A stretch of DNA of 64,000 bases from Macrostomum lignano (lineage: Eukaryota), in NCBI GenBank assembly GCA_002269645.1, contig NIVC01002545.1, positions 29,104 to 93,103 on the forward strand, given 5' to 3'. Made by a program: the position numbers and the translations under genes. This document shows positions 1 to 63,390 of the stretch, in pieces. Below the pieces are notes generated by a model. The model did not search any database and was not told where the DNA came from. It saw only the letters and a program-made list of their open reading frames with translations. Position 1 is the first letter of the stretch. Each line of letters starts with the position of its first letter.

Positions 1-3000
1 GCTGATTGGCCAAGATGCTTGGCAAAGAATTATCAGCGACAATGGGTGGCTGTGCCACCTGTGCCAGCTGCTGTCTGAGCGTCTCATTCAGCCCAGGAGC
101 GACTGGCGGCAGCGACTGTATTAGTAGGTTTCTGCTGCTGATTGATGAGAATAGAGGGGAGGGGAGCATGAGAATGGAGGGGAAGAGCAGGTATGACAAT
201 GAAGGGGAGAGGGCATGGGAATGGAGGGGAAGAGCAGGCATGAGAATGAAGGGGAGAGGGCATGAGAATGGAGGGGAAGAGCAGGCATGAGAATGAAGGG
301 GAGAGGGCATGAGAATGGAGAGGAAGAGCAGGCATGACAATGAAGGGGAGAGGGCATGAGAATGGAGGGGAGAGGGCATGAGAATGGAGAGGAAGAGCAG
401 GCATGAGAATGGAGGGGAAGAGCAGGCATGAGAATGAAGGGGAAGAGCAGGCATGAGAATGAAGGGGAAGAGCAGGCATGAGAATGGAGGGGAAGAGCAG
501 GGATGAAAATGGAGGGGAAGAGCAGGGATGAGAATGGAGGGGAAGAGCAGGATGAAAATGGAGGGGAAAAGCAGGGATGAGAATGGAGGGGAAGAGCAGG
601 GGTGAGAATGGAGGGGAAGAGCAGGATGAGAATGGAGGGGAAGAGCAGGATGAGAATGGAGGGGAAGAGCAGGGATGAGAATGGAGGGGAAGAGCAGGGG
701 TGAGAATGGAGAGGAAAATCTGTAAAAATCAGGTTAATTACCCCAAAAGCATCGCTTTTATTTATTGCAGCCAAACGGAGCCCCATTCTCTGCACCCGCC
801 GCCGCCGCCGGAGCTTCAGCGCAGCGCGTGCTGCTCCCAGCCGCTCCGAGTTCTGTCGCTATTCGATGGCGTGGCGTCCGCCTTGCTGTGCCTGCAGTCC
901 GCCGGCCTGTCCGTAGAAATCTGCTTCGCCTCCGAAATCGACCCGGACGCAATCCGTGTGGCCGCTTGTAACCATGGCAACCGGGTGCGGCAGCTGGGCA
1001 GCGTCACCGAGCTGACTGAGGACCGGCTGCGCTCTCTGCTGCCCATCGATCTGCTGATTGGGGGCTCGCCTTGCAGTCAGCTGTCCGCTGCCAATCCCAA
1101 TAGGTGACTGCTTGCTCCACTGGTGCACGTGTTCTGCCTCCCGGATCCTCAGTTGCTGGGCCAGCCTCCCGGATCCTCAGTTGCTGGGCCAGCCTCCCAG
1201 ATGCTCAGTTGTTGGGCCAGCCTCCCGGATCCTCAGTTGCTGGGCCAGCCTCCCAGATCCTCAGTTGCTGGGCCAGCCTCCCAGAGTGTCAGTTGCTGTG
1301 CCAGCCTCCCAGAGTGTCTGCTGCTGGGCCAGCCTCCCAGATCCTCAGTTGCTGGGCCAGCCTCCCAGATCCTCAGTTGCTGGGCCAGCCTCCCAGATCC
1401 TCAGTTGTTGGGCCAGCCTCCCAGATCCTCAGTTGCTGGGCCAGCCTCCCAGATCCTCAGTTGCTGGGCCAGCCTCCCAGATCCCCAGTTGCTGGGCCAG
1501 CCTCCCAGATGCTCAGTTGTTGGGCCAGCCTCCCGGATCCTCAGTTGCTGGGCCAGCCTCCCAGAGTGTCAGTTGCTGTGCCAGCCTCCCAGAGTGTCTG
1601 CTGCTGGGCCAGCCTCCCAGATCCTCAGTTGCTGGGCCAGCCTCCCAGATCCTCAGTTGCTGGGCCAGCCTCCCAGATCCTCAGTTGCTGGGCCAGCCTC
1701 CCAGATCCCCAGTTGTTGGGCCAGCCTCCCGGATCCTCAGTTGCTGGGCCAGCCTCCCAGAGTGTCAGTTGCTGTGCCAGCCTCCCAGAGTGTCTGCTGC
1801 TGGGCCAGCCTCCCAGATCCTCAGTTGCTGGGCCAGCCTCCCAGATCCTCAGTTGCTGGGCCAGCCTCCCAGAGTGTCAGTTGCTGTGCCAGCCTCCCAG
1901 AGTGTCTGCTGCTGGGCCAGCCTCCCAAATCCTCAGTTGCTGGGCCAGCCTCCCAGATCCTCAGTTGCTGGGCCAGCCTCCCGGATCCTCAGTTGCTGGG
2001 CCAGCCTCCCAGATGCTCAGTTGTTGGGCCAGCCTCCCGGATCCTCAGTTGCTGGGCCAGCCTCCCAGATTCTCAGTTGCTGGGCCAGCCTCCCAGAGTG
2101 TCAGTTGCTGTGCCAGCCTCCCAGAGTGTCTGCTGCTGGGCCAGCCTCCCAGATCCTCAGTTGCTGGGCCAGCCTCCCAGATCCTCAGTTGCTGGGCCAG
2201 CCTCCCAGATCCTCAGTTGCTGGGCCAGCCTCCCAGATCCTCAGTTGTTGGGCCAGCCTCCCAGATCCTCAGTTGCTGGGCCAGCCTCCCAGATCCTCAG
2301 TTGCTGGGCCAGCCTCCCAGATCCCCAGTTGCTGGGCCAGCCTCCCAGATGCTCAGTTGTTGGGCCAGCCTCCCGGATCCTCAGTTGCTGGGCCAGCCTC
2401 CCAGAGTGTCAGTTGCTGTGCCAGCCTCCCAGAGTGTCTGCTGCTGGGCCAGCCTCCCAGATCCTCAGTTGCTGGGCCAGCCTCCCAGATCCTCAGTTGC
2501 TGGGCCAGCCTCCCAGAGTGTCAGTTGCTGTGCCAGCCTCCCAGAGTGTCTGCTGCTGGGCCAGCCTCCCAAATCCTCAGTTGCTGGGCCAGCCTCCCAG
2601 ATCCTCAGTTGCTGGGCCAGCCTCCCAGATCCTCAGTTGCTGGGCCAGCCTCCCAGATGCTCAGTTGTTGGGCCAGCCTCTCGGATCCTCAGTTGCTGGG
2701 CCAGCCTCCCAGATCCTCAGTTGCTGGGCCAGCCTCCCAGAGTGTCAGTTGCTGTGCCAGCCTCCCAGAGTGTCTGCTGCTGGGCCAGCCTCCCAAATCC
2801 TCAGTTGCTGGGCCAGCCTCCCAGATCCTCAGTTGCTGGGCCAGCCTCCCGGATCCTCAGTTGCTGGGCCAGCCTCCCAGATGCTCAGTTGTTGGGCCAG
2901 CCTCCCGGATCCTCAGTTGCTGGGCCAGCCTCCCAGATTCTCAGTTGCTGGGCCAGCCTCCCAGAGTGTCAGTTGCTGTGCCAGCCTCCCAGAGTGTCTG

Positions 3001-4151
3001 CTGCTGGGCCAGCCTCCCAGATCCTCAGTTGCTGGGCCAGCCTCCCAGATCCTCAGTTGCTGGGCCAGCCTCCCAGATCCTCAGTTGCTGGGCCAGCCTC
3101 CCAGATCCTCAGTTGTTGGGCCAGCCTCCCAGATCCTCAGTTGCTGGGCCAGCCTCCCAGATCCTCAGTTGCTGGGCCAGCCTCCCAGATCCCCAGTTGC
3201 TGGGCCAGCCTCCCAGATGCTCAGTTGTTGGGCCAGCCTCCCGGATCCTCAGTTGCTGGGCCAGCCTCCCAGAGTGTCAGTTGCTGTGCCAGCCTCCCAG
3301 AGTGTCTGCTGCTGGGCCAGCCTCCCAGATCCTCAGTTGCTGGGCCAGCCTCCCAGATCCTCAGTTGCTGGGCCAGCCTCCCAGAGTGTCAGTTGCTGTG
3401 CCAGCCTCCCAGATTCTCAGTTGCTGGGCCAGCCTCCCAGATCCTCAGTTGCTGGGCCAGCCTCCCAGATCCTCAGTTGCTGGGCCAGCCTCCCAGATCC
3501 TCAGTTGCTGGGCCAGCCTCCCAGAGTGTCAGTTGCTGGGCCAGCCTCCCAGATCCTCAGTTGCTGGGCCAGCCTCCAAGATCCTCAGTTGTTGGGCCAG
3601 CCTCCCAGATCCTCAGTTGCTGGGCCAGCCTCCCAGAGTGTCAGTTGCTGGGCCAGCCTCCCAGATCCTCAGTTGCTGGGCCAGCCTCCAAGATCCTCAG
3701 TTGTTGGGCCAGCCTCCCAGATCCTCAGTTGCTGGGCCAGCCTCCCAGAGTGTCAGTTGCTGTGCCAGCCTCCCAGATCCTCAGTTGCTGGGCTGCCCGC
3801 CTCCCAGGTGTCGTTTTCTTGGCCAGCCTCCTGTATCGAGAATCCTATGAAAATTTTAATTTTCTAATATCCCATCTCCGTCAGGCAAGGCCTGGCCTCA
3901 GAATCCGGACTGCTTTTTTTCGAGTTTCACCGAATTCTCGAACTGCTCCGTCGGATTGGCAGCCCGAGCGCCGACGAGCGCCAACGGCGCCCCCTGTTCT
4001 GGCTGTTCGAGAATGTGGCCAGCATGCGGCAGGAGGATAAGACTCGCATTTCCAGGTCTGTCTGTCCGTCTGTCCGTCTGTCTGTCCGTCTGTCCGTCTG
4101 TCTGTCCGTCTGTCTGTCTGTCTCTCTGTCCGTCTGTCTGTCCGTCTGTCC

Positions 4152-4199
<48 letters not shown>

Positions 4200-4212
4200 G
4201 TCTGTCTGTCTC

Positions 4213-4259
<47 letters not shown>

Positions 4260-5653
4260 GTCTGTCTGTCTCTCTGTCTGTCTGACTGTCTGTCTGTCCT
4301 CCGTCAGTCCATTACTCTGCCCCACCCCGCAGGTTCCTAGGCCGCGAGCCGATCCGCCTGGACGCCGTCATTTTCTCAGCTCAGCGCCGAGCCCGCCTGT
4401 TCTGGGGCAACCTTCCCGGCATGCTGCGCTCCTCTGGCGTCGCCTCCACGCTGGCTGCCGATGTTGTGCACTGCGCCAGGCCGGCTGCCGCTGCTGGGCC
4501 TGAGCCCTGTGAAGCTGAGTGAGTTGGTTCCGGCAACTGGGTCTGGTTGGTTCTCCCAAAGCCAGTCACCCTCAGAACCAGTCACTCCCTGAACAGAAAG
4601 CGTCACTCTCTGAACCAGTCACTCCCTGAACCAGTCACTCCCTGAACCAGTCACTCCCTGAACCAGTCACTTCCTGAACCAGTCACTTCCTGAACCAGTC
4701 ACTTCCTGAACCAGTCACTTCCTGAACAGAAAGCGTCACTCCCTGAACCAGTCACTCCCTGAACAGAAAGCGTCACTCCCTGAACCAGTCACTCCTTGAA
4801 CCATTCACTCCCTGAACCAGTCACTCCCTGAACCAGTCACTCCCTGAACCAGTCACTCCCTGAACCAGTCACTCCCTGAACCAGTCACTCCCTGAACCAG
4901 TCACTCCCTGAACCAGTCACTCCCTGAACCAGTCACTCCCTGAACCAGTCACTCCCTGAACCAGTCACTTCCTGAACAGAAAGCGTCACTCCCTGAACCA
5001 GTCACTCCCTGAACCAGTCACTTCCTGAACAGAAAGCGTCACTCCCTGAACCAGTCACTCCCTGAACCAGTCACTCCCTGAACCAGTCACTCCCTGAACC
5101 AGTCACTCCCTGAACCAGTCACTCCCTGAACCAGTCACTCCCTGAACCAGTCACTCCCTGAACCAGTCACTCCCTGAACCAGTCACTCCCTGAACCAGTC
5201 ACTCCCTGAACCAGTCACTCCCTGAACCAGTCACTCCCTGAACCAGTCACTCCCTGAACCAGTCACTCCCTGAACCAGTCACTCCCTGAACCAGTCACTC
5301 CCATCCTGAAGGCGCCAGCGCCATCTGGCCAGCTGCATCGACCCTCGCAGCGGCCGCGCCGCCCGTCACGCCACCGTCGGCTGCGTCACCACGAAGCGCT
5401 GCAGCGGCCGCGGCCCTGACGGCTCCCTGCCGGTGGCCGACGCTGACGGCCTCCCGGACGCCCTGTGGGTGACGGAGCTCGAGCGGCTGTTCGGTTTCCC
5501 GGCACACTATACACGGACTGCGGACTGACCGACCTGGCCAGGCGCAGGCTGATTGGCCGCAGCTGGTGTCTGCCTCTGGTTGCCCACCTGCTGCGCCCGC
5601 TGCGCCACTTCTTTGCTGTGCTGCCGGGGCCTGATGCCGGCGACGGCGAGTGA
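1..5653 (+). CDS. DNMT3: DNMT3-family DNA (cytosine-5) methyltransferase, 3' part; exons <2-117, 771-1103, 3885-4055, 4333-4518, 5312-5653; apparent 2-bp insertion at about 5511
   Basis: Manual splicing gives an ADD-domain end ([21 protein letters not shown]...RSDWRQRL), motif [13 protein letters not shown], catalytic GGSPC, LLFFEF, motif [37 protein letters not shown] and (after the shift) [30 protein letters not shown]. All four introns are GT-AG and phase 2; the donor at 118 is weak. Confidence 0.93.
155..715. repeat. Purine-rich ~22-bp minisatellite (GAGAATGGAGGGGAAGAGCAGG) in a DNMT3 intron
   Basis: Visible tandem copies between the exon ending at 117 and the acceptor at 769-770. Confidence 0.9.
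1138..3795 (+). repeat. 28-bp minisatellite (CCCAGATCCTCAGTTGCTGGGCCAGCCT), about 95 units with higher-order blocks
   Basis: Tandem units fill DNMT3 intron 1104-3884; lines 1441-1620 recur at 2281-2460 (offset 840). Confidence 0.97.
4056..4300. repeat. (TCTG)n microsatellite starting at the splice donor
   Basis: The donor GTCTGT at 4056 is the first repeat unit. Confidence 0.95.
4565..5302. repeat. 16-bp minisatellite (CCTGAACCAGTCACTC)
   Basis: Tandem units run to within about 10 nt of the DNMT3 acceptor at 5310-5311. Confidence 0.95.
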
Positions 5654-7638: not shown

Positions 7639-8313
7639 TCACAGATTGTCCAAATCGTCTAGAAAACTTTTCTGCTTCCGCCGGTCTTCCGGCTCCCACT
7701 GAGCAGCCTTGTTGGTCTCGGCGATGAAGCTGTCCAGCTTCTGGTAGAAGCCACCAATTCGCTGCTTCAGCCGCTCACTCTGCTCGTCCAGCTGCAGCCT
7801 CCTGCTGGACATTCTCTCCTCTCTATCCGAATAGAATTTCGTCTTCTTCAAACTTTCCGTGGTTAAAAATCCGCGCAACGCGTGAAAAACGCGCGGATTC
7901 AAAGTTGGAAAGTTCGGCTCGCTGCCGCCTGCCGCGCCGTTGGCTCCGGCCGCCGCCGATGACGAAGTAGTCTGCTGCTGCTGCTGCTCGATCCCCAGGG
8001 CGGTCTTCGGTCGTCTCTTCTTTCGTTTCTTCCGTCTCAGGCCGGTCATGGTTGTGTTGGCAGGGCCTGCAGCAGATGAAGGATGCTGCGGGTCTCTGCT
8101 GGGCTGGGTACGGTTGCCCTGGGCATCCAGGAACGGCGCTCCACACGACGGCCCAGCGGCAGCGGCGGCTGTGTGCGGTCGAACCCGACGCACTGCAGCA
8201 GGCGGCGGCGGTTTTGCATCGGCTGCAGTTGGCGAATGATTTGAATTCTGAGTTGACGACTGCGGCGGCTCGTTGAAACGAACGCTGATCTCAGGGCGAC
8301 TGTTGGCGGGCAT
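7639..8313 (-). CDS. Hypothetical 224-aa protein: low-complexity N-half, basic RRKKRKKRR patch, helical or coiled-coil C-half
   Basis: ATG-to-stop ORF in GC-rich non-repetitive sequence with natural-looking composition; no family recognised. Confidence 0.6.
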   Translation of the reverse strand: MPANSRPEISVRFNEPPQSSTQNSNHSPTAADAKPPPPAAVRRVRPHTAAAAAGPSCGAPFLDAQGNRTQPSRDPQHPSSAAGPANTTMTGLRRKKRKKRRPKTALGIEQQQQQTTSSSAAAGANGAAGGSEPNFPTLNPRVFHALRGFLTTESLKKTKFYSDREERMSSRRLQLDEQSERLKQRIGGFYQKLDSFIAETNKAAQWEPEDRRKQKSFLDDLDNL

Positions 8314-10506: not shown

Positions 10507-13500
10507 CTAGGCCAGCGATATTGGACAGGCAAAGTCAGAGTGGGCTCCGGCACCAGATGTGGAGGCGCCACCGGCAGATTTGCGCTGATGAAGCGGCGCA
10601 GACTCTTGATCGCGAGTTGACTGCTGCTTAGGCAGAATCATCGAGTGCAGATTGGAAGCGCTGGTGACGGTCCTGCTGGCCAGTGAGTACTGGTCGTCAT
10701 CGATCATGCCCTGATAGGGGAAATTTTCCTCCCCTAAGTCGGCCAGATCTTTCGCCGAGCATCTGGGAAATCTGGGGATCTCCCTCGTGGCGTGGAATTT
10801 CTCGTAGTTGATCTGGTATTCGCCGTTGTCCTTCTGGTAGGTGATCAGGCGTTCGAACCTGTGACCCCAGCGAATCTCAGAGGGCAGGTAGCTGGAACGA
10901 GCCTGGAGAGGGGATCAAGGGGTAGTTGCTACGCTATCAATTGAAAAGTACAACTGAGCTGAAAAAACCCACAAGTTATAATCGTGATAGATTACTTCAA
11001 AATCTCACCCTGGATAATGGATACTCCAAAATCTCACCCTATAAGACTATAGATATTCCAAAATCTCACCCTAGATTATAGATACTCCAAAATCTCACCC
11101 TAGAAGACTATAGATACTTCAAAATCTCAAACTAGAAGACTATAGATACTCCAAAATCTCACTTTAGAAGTATATAGATATTCTAGAATCTCACCCTAGA
11201 AGACTATAGATACTCCAAAATCTCACTTTAGAAGTATATAGATACTCTAGAATCTCACCCTAGAAGACTATAGATACACCAAAATCTCACCCAGAAAGTT
11301 ACAGATACTCCCAAAATATCACTTTAGAAGACTATAGATACTCCAAAATCTCACCCTAGAAGATTATAGATACTCCAAAATCTCACCCTAGATTATAGAT
11401 ACTCCAAAATCTCACCCTAGAAGACTATAGATACTCCAAAATCTCACTTTAGAAGTCTATAGATACTCCAAAATCTCACCCTGGAAAACTATAGATACTC
11501 CAAAATCTCACCCTAGAAGACTATAGATACTCCAAAATCTCACCCTTGAAGACTATAGATACTCCAAAATCTCACTTTAGAAGACTATAGATACTCTAAA
11601 ACCTCACCCTAGAGGACTATAGACACTCCAAAATCTCACTTTAGAAGACTATATAGATTCTCTAAAACCTCACCAGAAGTCTATAGATACTCCAAAATCT
11701 CACCCTAGAAAACTATAAACACCAAAACCACAGCCGTACCTGAGTAGTCATCCCAGTGGACTCAATAATGCCCTCCAGTATGACAATTAGCTCGAATTGT
11801 TCGCTCAACAAATCGCCGCTAGAAATCTCCCAGAATGGCGAATCCTTCGTGATTTTATGCTCGACAATAATTGGCCAGACTAGGAACAGTCGATCGTAGC
11901 CCTCGCCGTAGCCTAAGTCAATGTCGAACTGCTCCAAAGGCAGCACTTCGCCCTCCCTTGTGATTCGTTTTTTAATTAATATTCCACGAACGTGAGCCTC
12001 TAGCAGTTGAGACTTGCGCATGTCGCCTACGCGAAACAGCAGCACCATCTGACCGTCCCGCTTGCAGATCACCGCGTTCTTGCTGAACATCAGCGTCTCG
12101 GCGCGCTTCTTGGGGCGCGACAGCTTGGCGAATACTAATCCAGTCATCAGGGCCTAAAGGGTAGGTGGGTACGGCGATGCAATGCTTATTAAAGTTTGCA
12201 ATGTACGTTGATAAATATTAAGTTTCATATGTATTTTATAGATTCATAAGTTCGACATGTACTTTATTAGATTCCTAAAGTTACACATGTGCTTTGCTAG
12301 ATTCCTAAAGTTCCACATGTACTTTGCTAGATTCTGAAAGTTCCACATGTACTTGGCTAGATTCCTAAAGTTTAACATGTTTTTGCTAGATTCCTAAAGT
12401 TCCACATGTACTTTGCTAGATTCTGAAAGTTCCACATGTACTTGGCTAGATTCCTAAAGTTTAACATGTTTTTGCTAGATTCCTAAAGTTCCACATGTAC
12501 TTTGCTAGATTCTGAAAGTTCCACATGTACTTGGCTAGATTCCTAAAGTTTAACATGTTTTTGCTAGATTCCTAAAGTTCCACATGTACTTTGCTAGATT
12601 CTGAAAGTTCCACAAGTACTTGGCTAGATTCCTAAAGTTTAACATGTTTTTGCTAGATTATTTAAGTTCCACATGTACTTTGCTAGATTCTGAAAGTTCC
12701 ACATGTACTTTGCTAGATTCTGAAAGTTCCACGTATACTTTGCTAGATTCTGAAAGTTCCACATGAACTTTGCCAGATTCTGAAAGTTCCACATGTTACT
12801 TTCCTATTTCTGCATTCCTGAAGTTCAAAATGAGTACTAAGCCTTACTCCGTCGACTCCTAAAATTCAAAATAGCACTTTAAAGAATTTTTTTCGAATTT
12901 TTTTTAAATTAAAACATTAATTTTTAGATCCTTAATCTCACAAAAGTCTCACCTGGATGATGACTCCAAAGCAGCTCTGCACCATCACCATGAGCACAGC
13001 CTCCGGGCACCTGTCTGACGGATACCGAAACCCGTAGCCAATCGTGTGCTGAGTCTCAATAGAGAACAGCAGGGCATCGGTGAATCCATTCACATTTTCA
13101 ACGCACGGTACAAAATTCTTCGGCTTTTTTTCGTCCAAATCGCCGTGCGAGAAGCAGATGAGCAACCAGAATAGGGAGAAAAACAACCAGCTGGCTATGA
13201 ACCCCACTGTGAACAACAGAAGCGCGTACCGCCATTTAATATCCACCAGAGTGGTGAAAATGTCTGCTAGGAATCTCCGCTTTCGTTTCTTGATGTTGTA
13301 GTGGGAGATGTTGCACTCGCCGTTCTTGAATACCAGGCGCTTGTACCTGCGGTCGGGTGCGGGTGCCCGATGTCAGCTGGCTGATGTCGAAAACACACAC
13401 ACACACACACACACATCACAGCTAAATAAACACACACATCAAAGCTAAATAAACACACACATCACAGCTAAATAAACACACACATCACAGCTAAATAAAC

Positions 13501-20661: not shown

Positions 20662-21963
20662 TGAGGGGGGTTCAAAAAGTTTTTGTCGTTTGGCTATATC
20701 ACATAATATTTTAATGAAACTTTTTTCGTTTAGAATAGTACTTTTATATAGAGTGTATATGGCAAATGTTCAACCTTCTATCAGTTTTTGAAGTCACTTT
20801 TTCAGCAAGAACTCAAGGCATCCCCTGCATTTTCAGCAAAATGGAGAAACAGGAGTATTGAGCTCTCATTAATTTTTTTTACCTTAAAAGGATTAAAGCA
20901 ACTAGCGATCGAAGCAGAGATCAAGTCTGTGTACCCCGCAACTTGCCCATCTCTATGCACAATTGAGAGACACCATACTGAATTTAAGCGAGGCAGGGTG
21001 ACCCTCGAAGATGACCCCTGGAGTGGGTGCCCTGCTACCAGCGCCAACCAGGAGAAAGTTGATGCAGTTGCCAAGCTCCTGGATGAAGATTGGCGAATTT
21101 GAGTTGCCAGCATTGCACACACTGTTGGCATCTCAATTGGCTCAGTTGAGGAAATCCTGCACCAAATCCTTGGATACAACAAGGTCAGTGCCCGTTGGAT
21201 GCCCCAAATGCTTTCGTGGGACCACAAGCTGAATTGGGTGAACTCTAGCTGCTTCATGCTTGACCTGTACAACGCGGACCCAAATGGATTCGAGCAACAA
21301 ATCATAACAGGGGATGAGTGCTGGCTACACCACTACGACCCTGAGTCCAAGCATGACTCCATGGAGTGGCGGCGCCCAGGAGAAGATGCACCTCGCAAGT
21401 TCAAGCAAGTGAAGTTGGCTGACAAGGTCTTGGGCTGCTTCTTCTGGGATTGTCAGGGGATGCTGCTTGCTGAGTACCTGCCAGTTGGGCACACTGTGAC
21501 AGGTGTGCGGTACGCTGAACAGCTAGGCCAACTTCATCAAGCAGTTGTCAGGAAGAGGCGAGGCAAGTTGAGTGCTCGCCCCCTGCTGCTTCATGACAAC
21601 GCCCTTGCTCACACAGCCCAAGTTGCAGTGAATGCTGCCACCACTGCAGGATTCGAAATTCTGCCCCATCTTGCCTATTCACCAGACCTGGCCCCATTAG
21701 ATTTCTACTTGTTTTGCCAGCTGAAGAAGCCACTCCGAGGGTGCCATTTTAAGTCCAATGAGGAAGTCATTGCCCTCGTGAACCAGTGGCTGGAGGACCA
21801 GACGGCAACCTTCTACACCAGCGGCATCCAAGAGCTGTGTGACCATTGGCAGAAGTGTATTGATTGCCAAGGAGATTATGTTGAAAAATAATGTAGCCTT
21901 GTCCTAAAATTTTTTGTTTGAATGTACTATGTACAAACGACAGAACTTTTTGAACCCCCCTTG
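20662..21963 (+). mobile_element. Complete but degraded mariner (Tc1/mariner) DNA transposon, 1302 bp, TA target duplication
   Basis: ~30-bp TIRs at 20662-20692 and 21934-21963, TA at 20660-61 and 21964-65, with a transposase relic inside. Confidence 0.95.
20841..21891 (+). pseudogene. Mariner transposase pseudogene
   Basis: Begins MEKQEY*, frameshifts in the T run at about 20873-20880, has TGA at 21100, then IITGDECWLHHYDPE, LLHDNA and YSPDLAP.DFYLF motifs. Confidence 0.92.
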
Positions 21964-28766: not shown

Positions 28767-30622
28767 ATGCGAGAATACAAATTAGTAGTCCTTGGCTCTG
28801 GTGGTGTTGGCAAATCTGCTCTCACTGTCCAGTTTGTGCAGGGAATTTTTGTTGAAAAATATGACCCAACAATTGAGGATAGCTATAGGAAACAGGTGGA
28901 GATTGACTCCAGCCAGTGCATGCTAGAGATTCTTGACACTGCCGGTACAGAGCAATTCACTGCAATGCGAGACTTGTATATGAAGAATGGCCAAGGCTTT
29001 CTATTGGTCTATTCGATCACTTCACAGTCCAGTTTTAATGATCTTGCTGAGTTAAGAGAGCAGATTCTGCGAGTAAAGGATAGCGATAATGTGAGTTTAC
29101 ACTTGGCCTCTGTGTTCTCAGTTATTTGTCTTCGTGTTTCACCCTACTAGGTTCTTTAAGAAGCTTGTCTGTCACTCTCTCAGATTCTCTGGCTTTGTCT
29201 GTCACTCTCTCAGATTCTCTGATTTTGTCTGTCACTCTCTCAGTTTCTCTGATTTCGTCTGTCACTCTCTCAGATTCTCTGATTTTGTCTGTCACTCTCT
29301 CAGTTTCTCTGATTTTGTCTGTCACTCTCTCAGATTCTCTGATTTTGTCTGTCACTCTCTCAGATTCTCTGATTTCGTCTGTCACTCTCTCAGATTCTCT
29401 GGCCTTGTCTGTCACTCTCTCAGATTCTCTGATTTTGTCTGTCACTCTCTCAGATTCTCTGGCCTTGTCTGTCACTCTCTCAGATTCTCTGGCCTTGTCT
29501 GTCACTCTCTCAGATTCTTTGGCCTTGTCTGTCACTCTCTCAGATTCTTTGGCCTTGTCTGTCACTCTCTCAGATTCTCTGATTTTGTCTGTCACTCTCT
29601 CAGATTCTCTGATTTTGTCTGTCACTCTCTCAGATTCTCTGGCCTTGTCTGTCACTCTCTCAGATTCTCTGGCCTTGTCTGTCACTCTCTTAGATTCTTT
29701 GGCCTTGTCTGTCACCCTCTTAATTTTATTTTCACTGACCATACTGTTCCTTCAAACCTACAGGTGCCAATCATAGTGGTTGGCAACAAGTGCGACTTAG
29801 AGGACGAGCGAACTGTCGGCAAGGAGCGGGGCCACAGCTTGGCCAGGCAGTGGAACTGCGCCTTCCTTGAGACTTCAGCCAAGGCCAAGCTCAATGTGCA
29901 GGAGGTGGGCCAATACCGATACTAGGGTAGACACTTTCAGATCCCCAGTTGCTAGGCCAGCCTCCCAGATCCTCAGTTGCAGGGCCAGACTCGCAGATCC
30001 TCAGTTGCTGGGCCAGCCTCCCAGATCCTCAGTTGCTGGGCCAGCCTCCCAGAGTGTCAGTTGCTGGGCCAGCCTCCCAGATCCTCAGTTGCTGGGCCAG
30101 CCTCCCAGATCCTCAGTTGCTGGGCCAGCCTCCCAGAGTGTCAGTTGCTGTGCCAGCCTCCCAGATCCTCAGTTGCTGGGCCAGCCTCCCAGATCCTCAG
30201 TTGCTGGGCCAGCCTCCCAGAGTGTCAGTTGCTGTGCCAGCCTCCCAGAGTGTCTGCTGCTGGGCCAGCCTCCCAGATCCTCAGTTGCTGGGCCAGCCTC
30301 CCAGATCCTCAGTTGCTGGGCCAGCCTCCCAGAGTGTCAGTTGCTGGGCCAGCCTCCCAGAGTGTCAGTTGCTGGGCCAGCCTCCCAGAGTGTCAGTTGC
30401 TGGGCCAGCCTCCCAGATCCTCAGTTGCTGGGCCAGCCTCCCAGAGTGTCAGTTGCTGGGCCAGCCTCCCAGATCCTCAGTTGCTGGGCCACCGCTACCC
30501 TCCCGCAGGTATTTTTCGACCTGGTCCACCAGATCAATTCGAACTCATCAGCTGACTCCGGCAAGAAACGAAAGGCCGGTGGCGGCAGCGGCGGAGGCTC
30601 GTCGAAGTGTTCGGCCTTGTGA
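28767..30622 (+). CDS. RAP1: Ras-related GTPase Rap1, 192 aa; exons 28767-29090, 29764-29904, 30509-30622
   Basis: [58 protein letters not shown]-terminal CAAX CSAL; both introns are phase 0 GT-AG. Confidence 0.97.
29165..29720. repeat. 30-bp minisatellite (CTGTCACTCTCTCAGATTCTCTGATTTTGT) in a Rap1 intron
   Basis: About 18 tandem units. Confidence 0.95.
29940..30490 (+). repeat. 28-bp minisatellite of the same family as 1138-3795, in a Rap1 intron
   Basis: Identical unit and the same AGTGTCAG and AGTGTCTG variants. Confidence 0.95.
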
Positions 30623-35175: not shown

Positions 35176-36206
35176 GAATGAATCTATTTCACATGAGCGT
35201 GACTCTCTACTGTGTCTTGTACAATAAATGTGTAGGACATAAGTGAATCTCTATAGAATCTGAAGTCACTACCTTCAGCACATGATTTTAAAGAACTCAG
35301 GATTCGAGCAGCAGAGCTTCGAGTTATAGCTTACTTAGCAGGACTTAGCAGGCTCTTTTAGGTCGCACTCAGTATAGAATTATGTTAATAGTATTCTATA
35401 GTACGAACTCAGAATGAGCGCATCGCATACGATTAATCCCATAACAAGCTGCGCCATTTTGAAGGTAATTAGGTGAACCAATCATCCGAGAGAAGGCGTA
35501 GTCGTTTGTTCTTGTTCGGGCTTCTTGGCGAGTTATTTTCTCGCTGTTAGCCACCGAGAAAAATTGAGAGATTTGGGAAATCATTATTTGTAATCGCTAG
35601 ATTTACCTGCCCTGAAGCAGATCTCCCAGTCCTTAAGTAGATTTACCTGTCCTGAAGTAGATTTACCTGTTCTGAAGTAGATTTACCTATCCTGAAGTAG
35701 ATTTACCTGTCCTGAAGTAGATTTACCTGTCCTGAAGTAGATTTACCTGTTCTGAAGTAGATTTACCTATCCTGAAGTAGATTTACCTTTCCTGAAGTAG
35801 ATTTACCTGTTCTGAAGTAGATTTACCTGTCCTGAAGTAGATTTACCTGTTCTGAAGTAGATTTACCTGTTCTGAAGTAGATTTACCTGTCCTGAAGTAG
35901 ATTTACCTATCCTGAAGTAGATTTACCTATCCTGAAGTAGATTTACCTATCCTGAAGTTGATTTTAAACTTTGCTGTAGTAGATTTACCTGTCCTGAAGT
36001 AGATCTCCCGGTTTCCAAGTAGATACCCCTGTCCTAAAGTAGATACCCCTGTCCTAAAGTAGATACCCCTGTCCTAAAGTAGATACCCCTGTCCTAAAGT
36101 AGATACCCCTGTCCTAAAGTAGATACCCCTGTCCTAAAGTAGATACCCCTGTCCTAAAGTAGATACCCCTGTCCTAAAGTAGATACCCCTGTCCTAAAGT
36201 AGATAC

Positions 36207-36520
36207 TGTAATATATTGAAGCTAAAGGCTTGTAGTGAATGCGTAGGAAAGTTGAACGTGGAGAGCCAGTACACACAACTGGGCTCTTATATGACTTGTT
36301 TATTCTTATTCATCAACCCTAGGACTAAAGAGGGTGGTTGGCCTGACTGCTCAGACCCCACCATGCTAGCCACGCGTAAAACGCAAACAACCCGACGCAG
36401 TGCACATGCACTGAAACACACTAGCCAATCAGCGCGCACGCAAATACTAACTAACTAAGAATGCACAAAGCATAATATTGCAATAATAAAAATACACTAG
36501 CATATCGCCACAATGTCACA
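36207..36520 (-). repeat. 3' LTR
   Basis: Direct repeat of 40546-40859, adjacent to the [13 protein letters not shown]. Confidence 0.97.
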
Positions 36521-36546
36521 CTTCCCCCCTGAGTCAGTTCTCCCCT

Positions 36547-39500
36547 TCACAGCTGAAGTCTCTGAGGTGGGCCTCGAACCCTCAGTGGGTACCGCCGTGT
36601 AGTGCCCGGCTCGTGTCGCACGCCGCTCGCATGCTCGTCGTCAGTGCCGGATGACGCCCCACAGGCCGTGTCGGCGACGGCTGCGGCGTCAGCGCTTTGC
36701 ACGCCGCTGTCACTCGGGGCGGCGCCGTCATCCGTAGCAGGCGGCGGATGGACGGTGTCGGCGGAGTCAGCGCGGGCTGCCACCAGCTGATCAGCGTGCC
36801 GGAAGTGCTGGCCTCGCTCCGAGTCAACCGTGTAGTTGCGGCTGCCGGCGCCCGTGACGACACCCTCAGCCCAGCGTGGCGTGTCGCCGGCTCTCGCGCC
36901 GGCGCTGTAGTCGCGGAGGAGGACGTGATCACCCGGCTGAAACTCGCGCGCTGGTCTGCGTCCCTGCAGCTGCCGCTCTTGCCGCCGTTGGACGTCGTCA
37001 GCCAGCGACGGTGCCAGGAGGTCCAGACGGCAGCGAAGCCGACGGCCGATGAGCAGCTGACTCGGGGCTGCGCCGCTGATGCTGTGTGGGGTGTTGCGGT
37101 AGCTGAGCAGCAGTCGCTGAAGCTCGACGTCAGAGTGGCCGCTCTTGAGCAGATGTCGCTTCAGGACTTGCACAAACCTCTCGGCCTGGCCGTTGGTGGC
37201 GGGATGAAACGGCGCCGAGAACACGTGACGAATGCCGTTGGCCCGGGTAAACTCGGCGAACTCGGCGGAGGCGAACTGCGGCCCGTTGTCGGACACCAGG
37301 GTGCGCGGAATGCCTTGGCGCGCGAACATCTCCCGCAGAGCCGCGATGGTGGCCGCCGACGTTGTACCGCGCATCCGCTGGACCTCCGGCCACTTGCTAT
37401 GAGCATCGACTACCACCAGGTACGTATGACCGTCGACCGGACCGGCAAAGTCGATGTGCAGGCGCTCCCACGGTTCGGATGGCAGAGGCCACGGTTGCAC
37501 CGGCGCCTTGGGCGGGTCGGGCTGGTTGAGCTGACAGGTGCGGCAGGACTTGGCCGCAGCTTCCAGATCGCCGTCGAGGCCGGGCCACCACACGTAGCTG
37601 CGAGCCAGGGCGCGCATTCTGCTGATGCCGGGATGCGCCTGATGTAGCTCTTGGATCACGCGTCGACGCAGCGCTGTAGGCACAACGACCCTTGCGCCCC
37701 ACAGGACACAGTCTTGGTCGACTGACAGCTCCGACTGCCGCCGGGCGAAGTCGCTCAGGTCGTCGCCGATGGGCGCGCCGGTCTGCAAGCAGCGAAGCAC
37801 CCGACCGAGTGAGACGTCTGTCCTAGTGTGCCGCGCCACCGCCAGCGCCGTGATGGCCGATCCGGAGCCCTCGTCGAGCAGCAGCGAGTTGACGGCCGGC
37901 TCCTCCTCGAACAGGTGCGGCAGCGGCAGCCGCGAGAGCGAGTCGCAGTTGGCATGCTTTTCGGTCGGCCGGAACTCCAGCGTGTAGTCGTAGCTCGACA
38001 GCCGAATGGCCCAGCGCTGCATCCGGGCGGCCGCGTGTGCCGGAATGCCCTTGCGCTCGCCCAGCAGACCCAGCAGCGGCAGATGGTCGGTGACGATGGT
38101 GAACCGCCGGCCATAGAGGAACTGGTGAAACCGGTGCAGACCAAACATGATGGCCAGCGCCTCCTTGTCCAGCTGGGAGTAGCCGCGCTGCGCTGCTGTT
38201 AGGCTGCGGCTAGCGAAGGCGACCGCGCAGTCCTTGTCGTCGATGCGGTGCGTCAAGACGACCCCCAGGCCGTAGGGAGAGGCGTCGCACTCTAATCGCA
38301 GCGGCAGATTCGGATTGTAGTGCACGAGAACCGGTGACTCGAGCAGCAGCCGCTTGGCCTCTGCAAATGCCTGTTGCTGCGGTGGCCCCCATGACCAGCG
38401 GGTGTTCTTGGCCAAGAGCTGGTGGAGCGGCGCCAGGACGGTAGACAAGTTGGGCAGGAACTTGCAGTACTGCGCTAGCATGCCCAGAAACGAGCGCAGC
38501 TGGCTGACGTCCTTGGGTGCTGGCGCGTCCTGGACGGCGGCGACCCGGTCCGGCAGCGGCTTGAGTCCGCTGGCGTCGATCCGATGGCCGAGGTACTCAA
38601 CAGAGTCTTCGAAGAATTTGCATTTCTCTTTGTTGAGCCGCAGGCCGGCGTCCTTCAAGCGCCGCAGGACCAGCGCCAGGTTCCTCTTGTGCTGTTGCAG
38701 GGTGCTGCCGGTGACCAGAATGTCGTCGACGAAGACTTGGACGGCATCCAGGTCTCCCAGCAGGGTGTCCAGGGTGCGTTGAAAGATCGCGCTGGCGCTC
38801 GTTATGCCGAATGGGAGGCGATTGACCTGGAAGAGGCCTCTGGGCGTGTTGATAGTGAGAAACGCCTTGCTGTCGTCGGCCAGAGGAAGCTGCAAGAAGG
38901 CGTTGGACAGATCGAGCTTGGTCCACTTGCAGCCGCCGCCGAGCTTGGCGAAGAGGTCCTCGATGCGGGGCAGCGGGTAGTGCTCCGGCTTGCTCGCCGC
39001 GTTGTATGTCAGCTTGTAGTCTCCGCAAATCCGAACGCTGCCGTCCTTCTTGACGACCGGCACGATCGGCGCAGCCCAGTCGCTGTGCTTCACGGCGGTT
39101 ATGATGCCACTGGACTCCATGCGCTGCAGTTCGGCGTCGACGCGCTCGCGCAGCGCGTAGGGGACCGGCCGCGCCTTGAAGAACCTGGGCTGAGCGTCCT
39201 CGGAGACTTGAAGCCGCACCTGGCCGTGCCGGAACTCGCCTAGGCCGTCCTCGAAGACTGGTGCGAACTCCTTGACGATGCTGCCGATGTCTTCGGAGTC
39301 GTGGACGGCGTGAACCTGCGCCATGATGCTCGGCCAGTCTAGCCGCAGCTTGGCCAGCCAGTCGCGACCGAGCAGGGCCGTGTCGCCGTGCTTGACGATC
39401 AGCAGGGGCAACTGCAGCTGCTGACCATCTTGCTGAACGGAGACCAACGCTTGGCCGAGAGGGCGGAACTGCTCGTCGGTGAAGGTGCGTAGGACAGCAA

Positions 39501-40545
39501 CGGACGGTGACATGGAGAGCCGCGGTAGAAGCATGAGCTGCAGAAACTCGGGCATCAGAGTGACGGCGGAGCCCGTATCGATGACAAACCGGCATGGCTG
39601 GCCATTGACTTGCAGCTGCACCGTCGGACCCGCGTTGCCACCAGCCGGCTGCACGGCAAAAATCGGCAGCTGCGCGGAGGCTTTCGGTGGTGGTGTCGGT
39701 GTCGCTTCTTGTAGAAAATGCAGCTTGGCTGAGCGACAGACCTTGCGAATATGGCCCGTCTTTCCGCACGCGTGGCATTTAGCGTCTCGCAGCTTACACT
39801 GCTGGCGACTGTGAGCACCGCCGCAGCTTGCACAGGTGCCACTGCCGGTGTTGCCGCTGCTGCCGACTCCGCTTCTGCTGTTGTTGCCACCGCCCTTGCG
39901 CTGCTGCGAACCTTCGAGCGCTGGCTTGGGTCCTTGGCGCTTATTCAGCTGGTGAGCGCGCAGCTGGGCTACTTGTGCTGCTGACTTCTGCGCCATCTCC
40001 GATGATGACCGCTCCACTGCCTCGAGGGATAGAACTCTCTCCTGCAGCGAGTTGAAGGTGGGATTTTTCTCCTCCAGCAGCTTCGCTCGGTAGGCATCGC
40101 TGTGCAGGCCGAAAACCAGCTGGTCTCGCAGTCGCTCATCTAGAGTGCCGCCGAAGTGACAGTGCTCACACGGGGAAGCACTGAAATTGCAGTGACTTGA
40201 CAAGGCCTTCAGGCTGGCAACGAACTCGGCAAGGCTCTCGCCAGGCTGCTGCAGGCGTCTTTGGAACCGAAATCTGGCTGCCAACTCGGACGGCTTTGGA
40301 GCGTAGTGGTCCTCCAGAATCTTGGTCAACTGGGCCAGAGACTTGTCGGAGACCTTGGCAGGTAGACACAAGTTTCTCAACACGGTATATGCCTCCTCAC
40401 CGATGGCAGTGACGAGTGTGGCCACTTTAGCTTCTTCCTTTACCTCCTTGCAGGTAAAGTAATGGTCGAGCCGTTCCAGCCAGACCTCAATGTTAGTATT
40501 GGCAGTTAGTATTGGAATTCCACCCAGCGCGGAGCTCGTCGCCAT
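36547..40545 (-). CDS. Gag-Pol polyprotein, 1332 aa, single ORF
   Basis: Gag with two zinc knuckles (CASCGGAH, CHACGKTGH), protease IDTGS, RT FVDD, RNase H CDAS...EALA, integrase with HHCC and HIDFAG/SDNGPQF/NGQAER; order PR-RT-RH-IN. Confidence 0.98.
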   Translation of the reverse strand: MATSSALGGIPILTANTNIEVWLERLDHYFTCKEVKEEAKVATLVTAIGEEAYTVLRNLCLPAKVSDKSLAQLTKILEDHYAPKPSELAARFRFQRRLQQPGESLAEFVASLKALSSHCNFSASPCEHCHFGGTLDERLRDQLVFGLHSDAYRAKLLEEKNPTFNSLQERVLSLEAVERSSSEMAQKSAAQVAQLRAHQLNKRQGPKPALEGSQQRKGGGNNSRSGVGSSGNTGSGTCASCGGAHSRQQCKLRDAKCHACGKTGHIRKVCRSAKLHFLQEATPTPPPKASAQLPIFAVQPAGGNAGPTVQLQVNGQPCRFVIDTGSAVTLMPEFLQLMLLPRLSMSPSVAVLRTFTDEQFRPLGQALVSVQQDGQQLQLPLLIVKHGDTALLGRDWLAKLRLDWPSIMAQVHAVHDSEDIGSIVKEFAPVFEDGLGEFRHGQVRLQVSEDAQPRFFKARPVPYALRERVDAELQRMESSGIITAVKHSDWAAPIVPVVKKDGSVRICGDYKLTYNAASKPEHYPLPRIEDLFAKLGGGCKWTKLDLSNAFLQLPLADDSKAFLTINTPRGLFQVNRLPFGITSASAIFQRTLDTLLGDLDAVQVFVDDILVTGSTLQQHKRNLALVLRRLKDAGLRLNKEKCKFFEDSVEYLGHRIDASGLKPLPDRVAAVQDAPAPKDVSQLRSFLGMLAQYCKFLPNLSTVLAPLHQLLAKNTRWSWGPPQQQAFAEAKRLLLESPVLVHYNPNLPLRLECDASPYGLGVVLTHRIDDKDCAVAFASRSLTAAQRGYSQLDKEALAIMFGLHRFHQFLYGRRFTIVTDHLPLLGLLGERKGIPAHAAARMQRWAIRLSSYDYTLEFRPTEKHANCDSLSRLPLPHLFEEEPAVNSLLLDEGSGSAITALAVARHTRTDVSLGRVLRCLQTGAPIGDDLSDFARRQSELSVDQDCVLWGARVVVPTALRRRVIQELHQAHPGISRMRALARSYVWWPGLDGDLEAAAKSCRTCQLNQPDPPKAPVQPWPLPSEPWERLHIDFAGPVDGHTYLVVVDAHSKWPEVQRMRGTTSAATIAALREMFARQGIPRTLVSDNGPQFASAEFAEFTRANGIRHVFSAPFHPATNGQAERFVQVLKRHLLKSGHSDVELQRLLLSYRNTPHSISGAAPSQLLIGRRLRCRLDLLAPSLADDVQRRQERQLQGRRPAREFQPGDHVLLRDYSAGARAGDTPRWAEGVVTGAGSRNYTVDSERGQHFRHADQLVAARADSADTVHPPPATDDGAAPSDSGVQSADAAAVADTACGASSGTDDEHASGVRHEPGTTRRYPLRVRGPPQRLQL

Positions 40546-40859
40546 TGTAATATATTGAAGCTAAAGGCTTGTAGTGAATGCGTAGGAAAGTTGAACGTGG
40601 AGAGCCAGTACACACAACTGGGCTCTTATATGACTTGTTTATTCTTATTCATCAACCCTAGGACTAAAGAGGGTGGTTGGCCTGACTGCTCAGACCCCAC
40701 CATGCTAGCCACGCGTAAAACGCAAACAACCCGACGCAGTGCACATGCACTGAAACACACTAGCCAATCAGCGCGCACGCAAATACTAACTAACTAAGAA
40801 TGCACAAAGCATAATATTGCAATAATAAAAATACACTAGCATATCGCCACAATGTCACA
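40546..40859 (-). repeat. 5' LTR
   Basis: Followed on the minus strand by A plus the PBS TGGCGACGAG. Confidence 0.97.
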
Positions 40860-42689
40860 GATACCCCTGTCCTAAAGTAGATACCCCTGTCCTAAAGTAG
40901 ATACCCCTGTCCTAAAGTAGATACCCCTGTCCTAAAGTAGATACCCCTGTCCTAAAGTAGATACCCCTGTCCTAAAGTAGATACCCCTGTCCTAAAGTAG
41001 ATACCCCTGTCCTAAAGTAGATACCCCTGTCCTAAAGTAGATACCCCTGTCCTAAAGTAGATACCCCTGTCCTAAAGTAGATACCCCTGTCCTAAAGTAG
41101 ATACCCCTGTCCTAAAGTAGATACCCCTGTCCTAAAGTAGATACCCCTGTCCTAAAGTAGATACCCCTGTCCTAAAGTAGATACCCCTGTCCTAAAGTAG
41201 ATACCCCTGTCCTAAAGTAGATACCCCTGTCCTAAAGTAGATACCCCTGTCCTAAAGTAGATACCCCTGTCCTAAAGTAGATACCCCTGTCCTAAAGTAG
41301 ATACCCCTGTCCTAAAGTAGATACCCCTGTCCTAAAGTAGATACCCCTGTCCTAAAGTAGATACCCCTGTCCTAAAGTAGATACCCCTGTCCTAAAGTAG
41401 ATACCCCTGTCCTAAAGTAGATACCCCTGTCCTAAAGTAGATACCCCTGTCCTAAAGTAGATACCCCTGTCCTAAAGTAGATACCCCTGTCCTAAAGTAG
41501 ATACCCCTGTCCTAAAGTAGATACCCCTGTCCTAAAGTAGATACCCCTGTCTTAAAGTCCTGAAGTACATGTAGATCTCACTGTCCTAAAGTAGATCTCA
41601 CTGTCCTGAAGTAGATCTCACTGTCCTGAAGTAGATCTCACTGTCCTGAAGTAGATCTCCCTGTCCTAAAGTAGATCTCACTGTCCTGAAGTAGATCTCA
41701 CTGTCCTGAAGTAGATATCACTGTCCTGAAGTAGATCTCACTGTCCTGAAGTAGATCTCACTGTCCTGAGGTAGATCTCACTGTCCTGAAGTAGATCTCA
41801 CTGTCCTGAAGTAGATCTCACTGTCCTGAAGTAGATCTCACTGTCCTGAGGTAGATCTCACTGTCCTGAAGTAGATCTCACTGTCCTGAAGTAGATCTCA
41901 CTGTCCTGAAGTAGATCTCACTGTCCTGAAGTAGATCTCACTATCCTGAGGTAGATCTCACTGTCCTGAAGTAGATCTCACTGTCCTGAAGTAGATCTCA
42001 CTGTCCTGAAGTAGATCTCACTGTCCTGAAGTAGATCTCACTGTCCTGAGGTAGATCTCACTGTCCTGAGGTAGATCTCACTGTCCTGAAGTAGATCTCA
42101 CTGTCCTGAAGTAAATCTCACTGTCCTGAAGTAGATCTCACTGTCCTGAAGTAGATCTCACTGTCCTGAAGCGGCCTGCAATTTGGCCAGCAGCTTCTAC
42201 ATCAAAGTATCTGTCCGTGCAACAACCTCCGTCACATGGCTCAACACACTGCTCAGCGAAATTCGAGAAAATAAACTCGGCAGGTGAACCTCTGCAGGGC
42301 CTCTACACCCTGCTCCTTCCCTGCCTACTCGAATAGCCTTTGTCTCCCCCCCCCCAACTCGAGTTCAGTGTGAAGGCCTTCGGTTTTATTCACCTTCCGT
42401 CTCATCCCCTCTCCCGGGCCGTTAAAATTAGAAAGTCCCTCTCTCGGCGGCCCTCTCAGTTTCGGTTGCGCCTCGAGATCTCGAGAATGCTTCGCTTTGC
42501 TGCAGCCTCATCCCCCCGCTGCTCTGCCTGTCCTGCTCCATCCTAATTCTTAACGAGCAGCCTCCCTCCCGGAGCACCGCCGATTGCAGTGCCGCCTCGC
42601 TTCATTAAGAAGACAACTGAAAAACCTGCCTCCCGTCTCCTCCGCCGTGCCTCCTTCCGCTCTTCCCCGAGGAGATCTATTCGAGCACT

Positions 42690-57880: not shown

Positions 57881-58519
57881 GGAAATTGGTAAGACTACTA
57901 CGGGATTATCTCCCCATTCTACATAAACAACAGCCCATATTTACTCGTGTAGCACAGCGTGTATATTATTGTTGCACGGAATTAAACAAAAATGAACTGC
58001 AAGAATTATTTCAAAGGAATGTACAAACTAGTTCAACATTATTAATCGTAGTTATTAGCAAAATATGAGTAATCTATTCAGCGAAAAAAAGATGAAAAAA
58101 TGGAAGACGACGTTGCAAAAGTCCAATTAAAAAGGTGGAAACATTCTCTGGAGTTCAGAAAGATTCATTAAGAAAGTAAGTGCAACAAGAAAATAAGTTT
58201 AAAGATTACTTGATAGAAACAAATTTGCAGTAAAATAGCAACATTGTAGAGGTTGGTCCAGTGGGCCTTAACCAAAGGTGTACACGCTTATACTTTGAAC
58301 GCTTTTAGACTGACGATTGAACAGCAGATATGATGAGGAATACAGTGGCATTCGTTGGCCTTCAATTTTTTAGTTTTTGAAAATTAGAAAAATAGAACTT
58401 TGAATTTGTTCTGATCGAAAATACAAGTTTTAATACTATTTCTGAAACTATTGCCACGTACACAAATAAAAAAATCAGCGAAGTTGGCCGAATTTAATCT
58501 GCTATGATGAGAATGCAAG

Positions 58520-63084: not shown

Positions 63085-63390
63085 GCAACTGAGGATCTGG
63101 GAGGCTGGCCCAGCAACTGAGGATCTGGGAGGCTGGCCCAGCAACTGAGGATCTGGGGGCTGGCCCAGCAACTGAGGATCTGGAAGCTGGCTCAGCAACT
63201 GAGGATCTGGGAAGCTGGCTCAGCAACTGAGGATCTGGGAAGCTGGCTCAGCAACTGAGGATCTGGGAAGCTGGCTCAGTAACTGAGGATCTGAGAGACT
63301 GGCCCAGCAACTGAGGATCTGAGATGCTGGTGGCCCAGCAACTGAAACTGAGGGTCTGGGCGGCTGCCCAGCAGCTGAGAATTTGGGAGG
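63085..63390 (-). repeat. 28-bp family minisatellite, reverse orientation
   Basis: CAGCAACTGAGGATCTGGGA units just 3' of the LRR gene stop. Confidence 0.9.

Follow-up and report, generated by a model that had tools for sequence, protein, structure and literature searches.

A DNMT3 gene of the flatworm Macrostomum lignano: three near-identical copies, one of them truncated before motif X as assembled

Does a DNMT3-like gene in a flatworm genome belong to the animal itself, and does the copy read here still encode a complete enzyme? The question is raised by the first 5653 nucleotides (nt) of a 64,000-nt stretch of Macrostomum lignano DNA (contig NIVC01002545.1, positions 29,104 to 93,103), the whole of which we call the window. 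A sequence-only reading had described in these 5653 nt five spliced exons encoding a genuine ADD-containing DNMT3, of host type rather than bacterial or transposon-captured, and had regarded the product as a writer of de novo 5-methylcytosine (5mC). We conclude, with a probability of about 0.9, that positions 1-5653 carry the 3' two-thirds of one of three near-identical M. lignano DNMT3 copies, with the ADD domain directly upstream of the catalytic domain, and that the gene encodes a vertically inherited animal de novo cytosine-5 methyltransferase. The window copy itself, as assembled, is interrupted by a 2-bp insertion shortly before its end.

Within positions 1-5653, the gene consists of five coding segments and four introns with canonical GT..AG borders, all on the plus strand:

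1 to 117, plus strand, frame from base 2: 3' part of an exon that starts 55 nt upstream of the window; end of the ADD domain (PHD-like finger), donor GT at 118.
118 to 770, plus strand: intron 1, phase 2, nearly all of it filled by a 25-nt minisatellite (145-716).
771 to 1103, plus strand: exon with the linker between ADD and methyltransferase (MTase), motif I, the ASE glutamate and motif IV.
1104 to 3884, plus strand: intron 2, phase 2, with about 95 copies of a 28-nt minisatellite (1136-3793).
3885 to 4055, plus strand: exon with the FFEF helix, which carries an FF-interface phenylalanine, and motif VI.
4056 to 4332, plus strand: intron 3, phase 2, with a GTCT repeat (4056-4298) that includes the donor GT.
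4333 to 4518, plus strand: exon with motif VIII and a lineage-specific, low-complexity insert of about 25 amino acids (aa).
4519 to 5311, plus strand: intron 4, phase 2, with a 16-nt minisatellite (4562-5302), donor GTGAGT and an acceptor AG in the last repeat unit.
5312 to 5653, plus strand: last exon, with the target recognition domain (TRD), motif IX and the frameshift; motif X and the ancestral stop (5651-5653) lie in the +2 frame.

The five-exon model proposed beforehand holds for the exons, their GT..AG borders, the ADD end and motifs I to IX, which are colinear with human DNMT3A, but not for a single open frame running through motif X. The GenBank annotation of this assembly (Mlig_3_7, GCA_002269645.1) places on NIVC01002545.1 a gene whose 805-aa product has ADD and methylase domains; this annotation is transcript-based (PMC5730564).

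Comparison of the spliced translation with DNMT3A located the following catalytic motifs:

859 to 879, plus strand: motif I, LFDGVAS.
1060 to 1074, plus strand: motif IV, GGSPC, with the catalytic Cys at 1072-1074.
4009 to 4017, plus strand: motif VI, ENV.
4385 to 4411, plus strand: motif VIII, RRARLFWGN (RxR).
5490 to 5513, plus strand: motif IX, FGFPAHYT.
5549 to 5581, plus strand: motif X (GRSW), present but out of frame.

Motifs I, IV, VI and VIII, the TRD and motif IX share one spliced frame (859-5513), in a linear, non-permuted order that is colinear with DNMT3A. The conserved ASE glutamate (E94) is invariant in the protein alignment; its known role is contact with S-adenosylmethionine (SAM). 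When the protein was compared with all PDB sequences by phmmer, DNMT3A came first (E=1.8e-74, 254 bits, about 40% identity), in an alignment that stays colinear between the ADD's C-terminal end and the final residue, and DNMT3B followed at 5e-66. The lower matches were plant DRM2 at 7e-17 (DRM proteins reaching at most 65 bits) and the bacterial HhaI and HaeIII at about 1e-4; neither DNMT1 nor DNMT2 was in this list at E<=1e-3. The DNA_methylase profile search that the sequence-only reading had suggested gave a clear answer: in a Pfam scan of the window-only protein, this family (PF00145, E=3.4e-19) is the sole one found. The closest proteins in the sequence search are three UniProt entries of M. 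lignano itself.

The predicted structure agrees with this assignment. The AlphaFold model, built with 44 homologues, has a mean predicted local distance difference test value (pLDDT) of 79.7 and a predicted template-modelling score (pTM) of 0.77, its low-confidence parts being the catalytic loop (residues 141-155) and part of the lineage-specific insert (252-264). In a Foldseek search of the PDB, the best 50 matches are all DNMT3A, DNMT3B or DNMT3C, with target-normalised template-modelling (TM) scores of 0.87-0.92 against chains holding only the catalytic domain. The insert itself (residues ~245-272, encoded by 4440-4518 and 5312-5325) is Ala/Pro-rich, lies between motif VIII and the TRD and is probably disordered; of the rare amino-acid differences between the M. 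lignano copies, two fall in it. Other animal DNMT3s have 76 positions conserved at 90% or more; the window protein matches 67 of them, and most of the nine changes are conservative.

We also built a neighbour-joining tree (41 sequences, 271 columns, 100 bootstraps; DNMT1 and DNMT2 left out). The window protein pairs with an M. lignano UniProt model inside a clade of 27 sequences with 100% bootstrap, which comprises all the named animal DNMT3s and a few unnamed or non-animal database relatives, while prokaryote-type and protist relatives fall outside. Within the animal DNMT3 clade, the two Macrostomum proteins are basal and have a long branch. The tree that had been proposed to settle the family is thus informative on DNMT3, within which it places the protein, and not on DNMT1 and DNMT2, which are not among its 41 sequences. 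Together with the PDB scores and the structural matches, it bears out the description of the gene as a genuine ADD-containing DNMT3: the window gene belongs to the DNMT3 family.

The ADD domain is cut by the edge of the window, which holds its last 39 aa, including the last zinc pair (C18 at 53-55 and C21 at 62-64) in a WxCxxC context. Taken alone, this piece gives a weak score (E=0.09), but its five best PDB matches are all DNMT3A ADD domains, at their exact C-terminal end. The remainder was found on the same contig. The cut exon starts 55 nt before the window, at the acceptor ...ttttcag followed by GCCATGTGCGG, and its translation reads AMCGSAECGRCFCQGCLTL followed by LIGQ. Another exon, 671-1035 nt upstream, supplies the GATA-like finger together with the first half of the PHD one (ENVCLACGTV...HPVLRGSLCVDCLENY...GDDGWFMYCSVCGRPGNQ). 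With the exons for both of its fingers, GATA-like and PHD, present on this contig, the ADD is complete and genuine. The products annotated on all three contigs that carry the gene are recorded with ADD_DNMT3, DNMT3_ADD_GATA1-like and DNA_methylase domains, PF17980 and PF21255 being on record, and PF17980 also scores on the conspecific UniProt models. In the Pfam scan of the window-only protein PF17980 had no match, the model covering the GATA-like finger, which is encoded upstream of the window. An ADD profile search, also suggested beforehand, therefore failed on the window protein, and the domain was confirmed from the upstream exons and the records of the annotated products.

A methylase found in a repeat-rich stretch could also be of bacterial type, or have been captured by a transposon or retroelement. 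Four neighbours in the window bear on this point:

7639 to 8313, minus strand: an annotated gene with a 224-aa open reading frame (ORF), convergent with DNMT3, without a convincing Pfam family.
11713 to 12147, minus strand: inward-rectifier K+ (Kir) channel, annotated product 528 aa.
21199 to 21891, plus strand: mariner-type transposase ORF (PF01359, 230 aa).
36207 to 40845, minus strand: young Ty3/gypsy long terminal repeat (LTR) retrotransposon, with an intact 1332-aa gag-pol ORF (36547-40545) encoding protease, reverse transcriptase, RNase H and integrase.

A foreign origin could be argued from the prokaryote-type DNMT3 relatives found among the matches at 30-35% identity and from the presence of a young Ty3/gypsy element and a mariner transposase in the same window. 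On the contrary, the gene contains an ADD domain and is interrupted by four GT..AG introns in the window, with further introns upstream; its synteny with host genes (the 224-aa gene and the Kir channel) is found in three subgenome copies; and it falls in the 100%-bootstrap animal clade, apart from the non-animal relatives. The transposable elements are 15-31 kb off, no reverse transcriptase or transposase being nearer than 15 kb, and the Ty3/gypsy one is encoded on the other strand. We consider a captured or bacterial-type methylase extremely improbable, and the view that the gene is of host type is upheld on all these grounds.

The intron positions mostly differ from those conserved in bilaterians. 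In Lineus (a nemertean), Spea (a frog) and Ciona, eight or nine introns agree in position and phase over the same part of DNMT3, in which the Macrostomum gene has four introns, all of phase 2, and leaves five conserved positions empty. Comparison with Lineus and Spea had raised the idea of a retrogene with newly gained introns, which was dropped after Ciona and the barnacle Pollicipes were added. Indeed, intron 3 (ISR/F, phase 2) agrees exactly in position and phase with an intron of the Pollicipes DNMT3, and intron 1 is displaced from another by no more than a codon; of the other two, one is unique and one lies in the lineage-specific insert. This pattern, with its five empty positions, points to heavy intron loss with some repositioning, and not to a foreign origin.

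The gene is present in three copies, on NIVC01000305.1, NIVC01002545.1 (the window copy) and NIVC01003236.1, each flanked by the same neighbours, with annotated products of 846, 805 and 846 aa, respectively. This fits the organisation described for the DV1 line, which carries three genetically isolated subgenomes, S, L1 and L2, diverging by 1.4-2.4% at the level of single-nucleotide polymorphisms (SNPs) (PMC10733133). Over 18,313 bases, the window and the reverse complement of the NIVC01002545.1 locus agree without a single mismatch, which places the DNA in M. lignano (Platyhelminthes, Macrostomorpha). The 224-aa protein is identical in all three subgenome copies. The exon/intron layout of the DNMT3 gene is the same in the three copies and the intron lengths vary with minisatellite copy number: 653, 502 and 609 nt for intron 1 (window copy first), 2781, 543 and 457 nt for intron 2, and 793, 511 and 2023 nt for intron 4, the next intron upstream of the window measuring 615, 1144 and 2509 nt.

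Across 1566 aligned coding nt, the three copies differ at 1.2-3.0% of synonymous sites (pS), and the ratio of non-synonymous to synonymous differences (pN/pS) is 0.16-0.35, so that the gene is under purifying selection overall. Private changes number four non-synonymous and four synonymous in the window copy, and three and eight in one sister copy (L008); relaxed selection on the window copy was considered, but these numbers are too small to conclude. The two sister copies are intact and under purifying selection, so the animal should keep a working DNMT3. By diagnostic residues, the UniProt entry A0A1I8FN39 corresponds to the NIVC01003236.1 copy and A0A1I8IKC4 to the NIVC01000305.1 copy. These two models and A0A1I8F4V2, all derived from the older ML2 assembly, contain out-of-frame stretches, for instance in exon 3 and in the ADD exon, and should not be used for residue-level inference. 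The UniProt and GenBank models of M. lignano DNMT3 represent the same gene, and the TA insertion described below is present in the window copy alone.

The minisatellite of intron 2 also occurs elsewhere. Its 28-nt unit, GCCTCCCAGATCCTCAGTTGCTGGGCCA, forms arrays at 1136-3793 and 29938-30491 on the plus strand and at 58518-59065 and 63073-63330 on the minus strand, with 112 matches in all against none expected by chance; one array is in the DNMT3 intron and one is inside a Rap1 gene. These arrays are a dispersed minisatellite family.

The second part of the question concerns the 3' end of the window copy. The spliced coding sequence (CDS) of the five exons is 1148 nt long, which is no multiple of 3, while the sister copies have a clean 1146 nt. 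Three sites account for what distinguishes this end:

5508 to 5511, plus strand: TA insertion, TATA here against TA in the two sister copies, in the three-copy DNA alignment.
5526 to 5528, plus strand: premature TGA, where the frame of motifs I to IX ends, after HYTRTAD.
5547, plus strand: copy-specific SNP, G here and A in both sister copies (Arg versus Lys), 36-39 nt downstream of the insertion.

In the window copy the sequence at the insertion is CACAC-TA-TACACGG (CACACTATACACGG), against CACACTACACGG, in frame, in both sister copies; it is this extra TA that puts motif X out of frame. An earlier placement of the lesion as an extra AC, from comparison with the protein A0A1I8FN39, was replaced by the extra TA once the DNA of the sister copies was aligned. 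The GenBank CDS of the window copy stops exactly at 5528, while the sister CDSs run to the normal stop, and the 41-aa difference between the annotated lengths (805 on NIVC01002545.1 against 846 and 846) is exactly that predicted from the frameshift. The product of the window copy lacks the last 45 residues, that is, motif X and the C-terminal helices, including the counterparts of the RD-interface residues of DNMT3A. In C5 methyltransferases, motif X and motif I together form the SAM pocket. With motif X and the C-terminal helices lost, the product as encoded should be catalytically dead, as predicted from the sequence. The description of this copy as a de novo 5mC writer is hence to be divided: the host-type DNMT3 family stands, but a working enzyme is not supported for the copy as sequenced, with its 2-bp insertion before motif X. 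The GGSPC cysteine and ENV are intact in it, and a loss of catalytic residues like that of DNMT3L is not seen.

Several points weigh against the reading defended here, and the last of them bear on the insertion. The exon junctions are deduced from GT..AG sites, homology, the same layout in three copies and the transcript-based GenBank annotation. The junction between the fourth and fifth coding segments has an in-frame alternative, from GAT/GTTGTG (~4457) to CAG/CGC (5318/5319), which would delete the lineage-specific insert; we did not adopt it, as GTGAGT is the stronger donor and is kept in all three copies, and the conspecific models contain the insert. With DNMT1 and DNMT2 absent from the tree, their exclusion depends on the score gap among the PDB matches. 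About 325 N-terminal aa of the annotated product lie outside the DNA read; PWWP (PF00855) is neither among the Pfam records of the annotated 805- and 846-aa products nor in the conspecific partial models, and we lean towards its absence. Enzyme activity and mechanism are argued by homology only. Finally, the Mlig_3_7 assembly was produced from noisy PacBio reads with Canu and polished by means of short reads with Pilon (PMC5730564), and 93% of read pairs are multi-mapping (PMC10733133), so the extra TA could be an artefact.

On this last account, the window copy would be truly intact, the extra TA a consensus or polishing error of Mlig_3_7, and all three copies would encode full 846-aa enzymes. 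The many frame errors of the older ML2-based UniProt models in this same gene speak in its favor, as does the sequence 3' of the insertion, which still matches the intact copies nearly throughout, a single conservative change being found over 45 codons. The insertion is, however, of 2 bp and in a non-homopolymer context, unlike the usual PacBio error. It is also the lone frame-shifting indel in the coding sequence compared (~2.2 kb, from DNMT3 and the 224-aa gene), and the Kir channel, judged by its annotated lengths alone (527, 528 and 528 aa), gives no indication of a frameshift. In non-coding DNA, the copies differ by a small indel about every 160 bp; with this density there and a single frameshift in coding sequence, most indels look real and coding errors rare. 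The four private non-synonymous changes of the window copy also count against an assembly error. Among the hits of the protein search there was no Logan or ENA contig of Macrostomum for this gene. On balance, we favor a real TA insertion in one subgenome copy as somewhat the more probable explanation, and regard the assembly error as a serious but less probable one.

If the intact copies work like DNMT3A and DNMT3B, as homology suggests, the ADD would bind the unmodified H3 tail, relieving autoinhibition, and subunits would oligomerise via the FF interface, both phenylalanines of which are conserved (FFEF and ISRF). The TRD would contact CpG and the target cytosine would be flipped out, its C6 being attacked by the GGSPC cysteine with help from the RxR arginines and the glutamate of ENV. 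Motifs I and X would hold the SAM that donates the methyl group.

In such a scheme, the truncated copy might serve as a catalytically dead accessory subunit, in the manner of DNMT3L or DNMT3B3, pairing with the intact copies through the FF interface. It does keep the ADD, motifs I to IX and both FF-interface phenylalanines, and its 805-aa product is in the GenBank annotation made from transcripts (PMC5730564). Synonymous divergence among the copies is nevertheless 1-3%, so the lesion, if real, is very recent, and there are no signs of adaptation to such a role: unlike in DNMT3L, the catalytic cysteine and ENV are still there. Loss of the C-terminal helices that pack on the Rossmann core probably destabilises the fold. 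An accessory role is thus very unlikely in our opinion; that the insertion is real and that the truncated copy is expressed as a dead protein of ADD and partial MTase, modulating the two intact copies, also seems to us quite unlikely.

The closest known systems are the vertebrate DNMT3A and DNMT3B (PDB 5YX2, 4U7T, 6U8P), which likewise have the ADD directly upstream of the catalytic domain and the same linear order of motifs. The catalytic Cys, ENV, RxR, HYTD, GRSW and the FF-interface phenylalanines are conserved with them, at a target-normalised TM-score of about 0.9. The M. lignano gene differs from them in its 846-aa product with no PWWP on record, in the low-confidence insert of about 25 aa, and in having four introns against 8-9 in bilaterian genes; in addition, the window copy ends before motif X. 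In the TRD, M. lignano has TT-K where DNMT3A has TT-R, the Lys being as in DNMT3B. Several contact positions differ from DNMT3A in the M. lignano protein: in DNMT3A numbering, R836 is Lys, V716 of the catalytic loop is Ala and R882 is Asp. DNMT3C and the tick "DNMT3C-like" proteins have, as in M. lignano, an ADD and a catalytic domain with no detectable PWWP, and tick proteins are among the best non-flatworm matches (43-46% identity). Rodent DNMT3C is, however, a recent duplicate of DNMT3B, and the resemblance of the M. lignano gene to it is one of architecture, not orthology.

The truncated window copy would resemble DNMT3L and DNMT3B3 in that its catalytic region is incomplete at the C-terminal end, whereas the ADD and the FF interface are kept. 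But DNMT3L is an old, selected gene without catalytic residues, whereas in the window copy the Cys and ENV are intact and the change is a single, very recent 2-bp event, or possibly an artefact. Plant DRM2, the next-best PDB family, has a related catalytic fold; DRM proteins have circularly permuted motifs and UBA domains, while the window protein is linear. The prokaryotic DNMT3-like C5 methylases share a related fold (~130 bits), but they have no ADD and no introns and lie outside the animal clade.

Elsewhere in the window, the flanks of the Ty3/gypsy element (36207-36506 and 40546-40845) are 100% identical over at least 300 nt, and the element lies within a 20-nt minisatellite array (35598-36204 and 40859-42171). 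Look-ups of its gag-pol ORF and of a Trichinella protein returned nothing. The mariner ORF is probably a fragment or a domesticated remnant. Three other genes were recognised:

28767 to 30622, plus strand: Rap1-type small GTPase, three exons.
48572 to 51416, plus strand: cyclic-nucleotide-gated channel.
54661 to 55338, minus strand: glycosyltransferase exon resembling polypeptide N-acetylgalactosamine (GalNAc) transferase.

Three papers (PMC9246332, PMC11292947, PMC10658182), all citing the 2015 genome paper, state that M. lignano still possesses DNMT1 and DNMT3 and a low level of 5mC, which sets it apart from planarians and parasitic flatworms. Two of them, reviews (PMC11292947, PMC10658182), credit the low-level 5mC to Wasik 2015; it is no more than indirect evidence for de novo CpG methyltransferase activity. 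The statement in the sequence-only reading that Macrostomum keeps both enzymes is confirmed by these sources. As retention of DNMT1 and DNMT3 and low 5mC are published there, and the gene is annotated in GenBank, our main finding is already known. The truncating insertion, the three-copy structure, the frame errors of the UniProt models and the observations on introns are additions to it.

The finding thus has little weight as a discovery and is mainly of practical use for dnmt3 knock-out, RNA interference or methylation work in this flatworm. There are three copies to target, of which the NIVC01002545.1 copy is truncated before motif X as assembled, and the UniProt models available for design carry frame errors. 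If the lesion is real, it would be a small case of early gene fractionation in a neopolyploid. Were the truncated copy to act as a modulator of the two intact ones, a very young polyploid flatworm would show the first step towards an accessory DNMT3 subunit; otherwise, it would show the onset of DNMT3 loss, which has happened repeatedly in this phylum.

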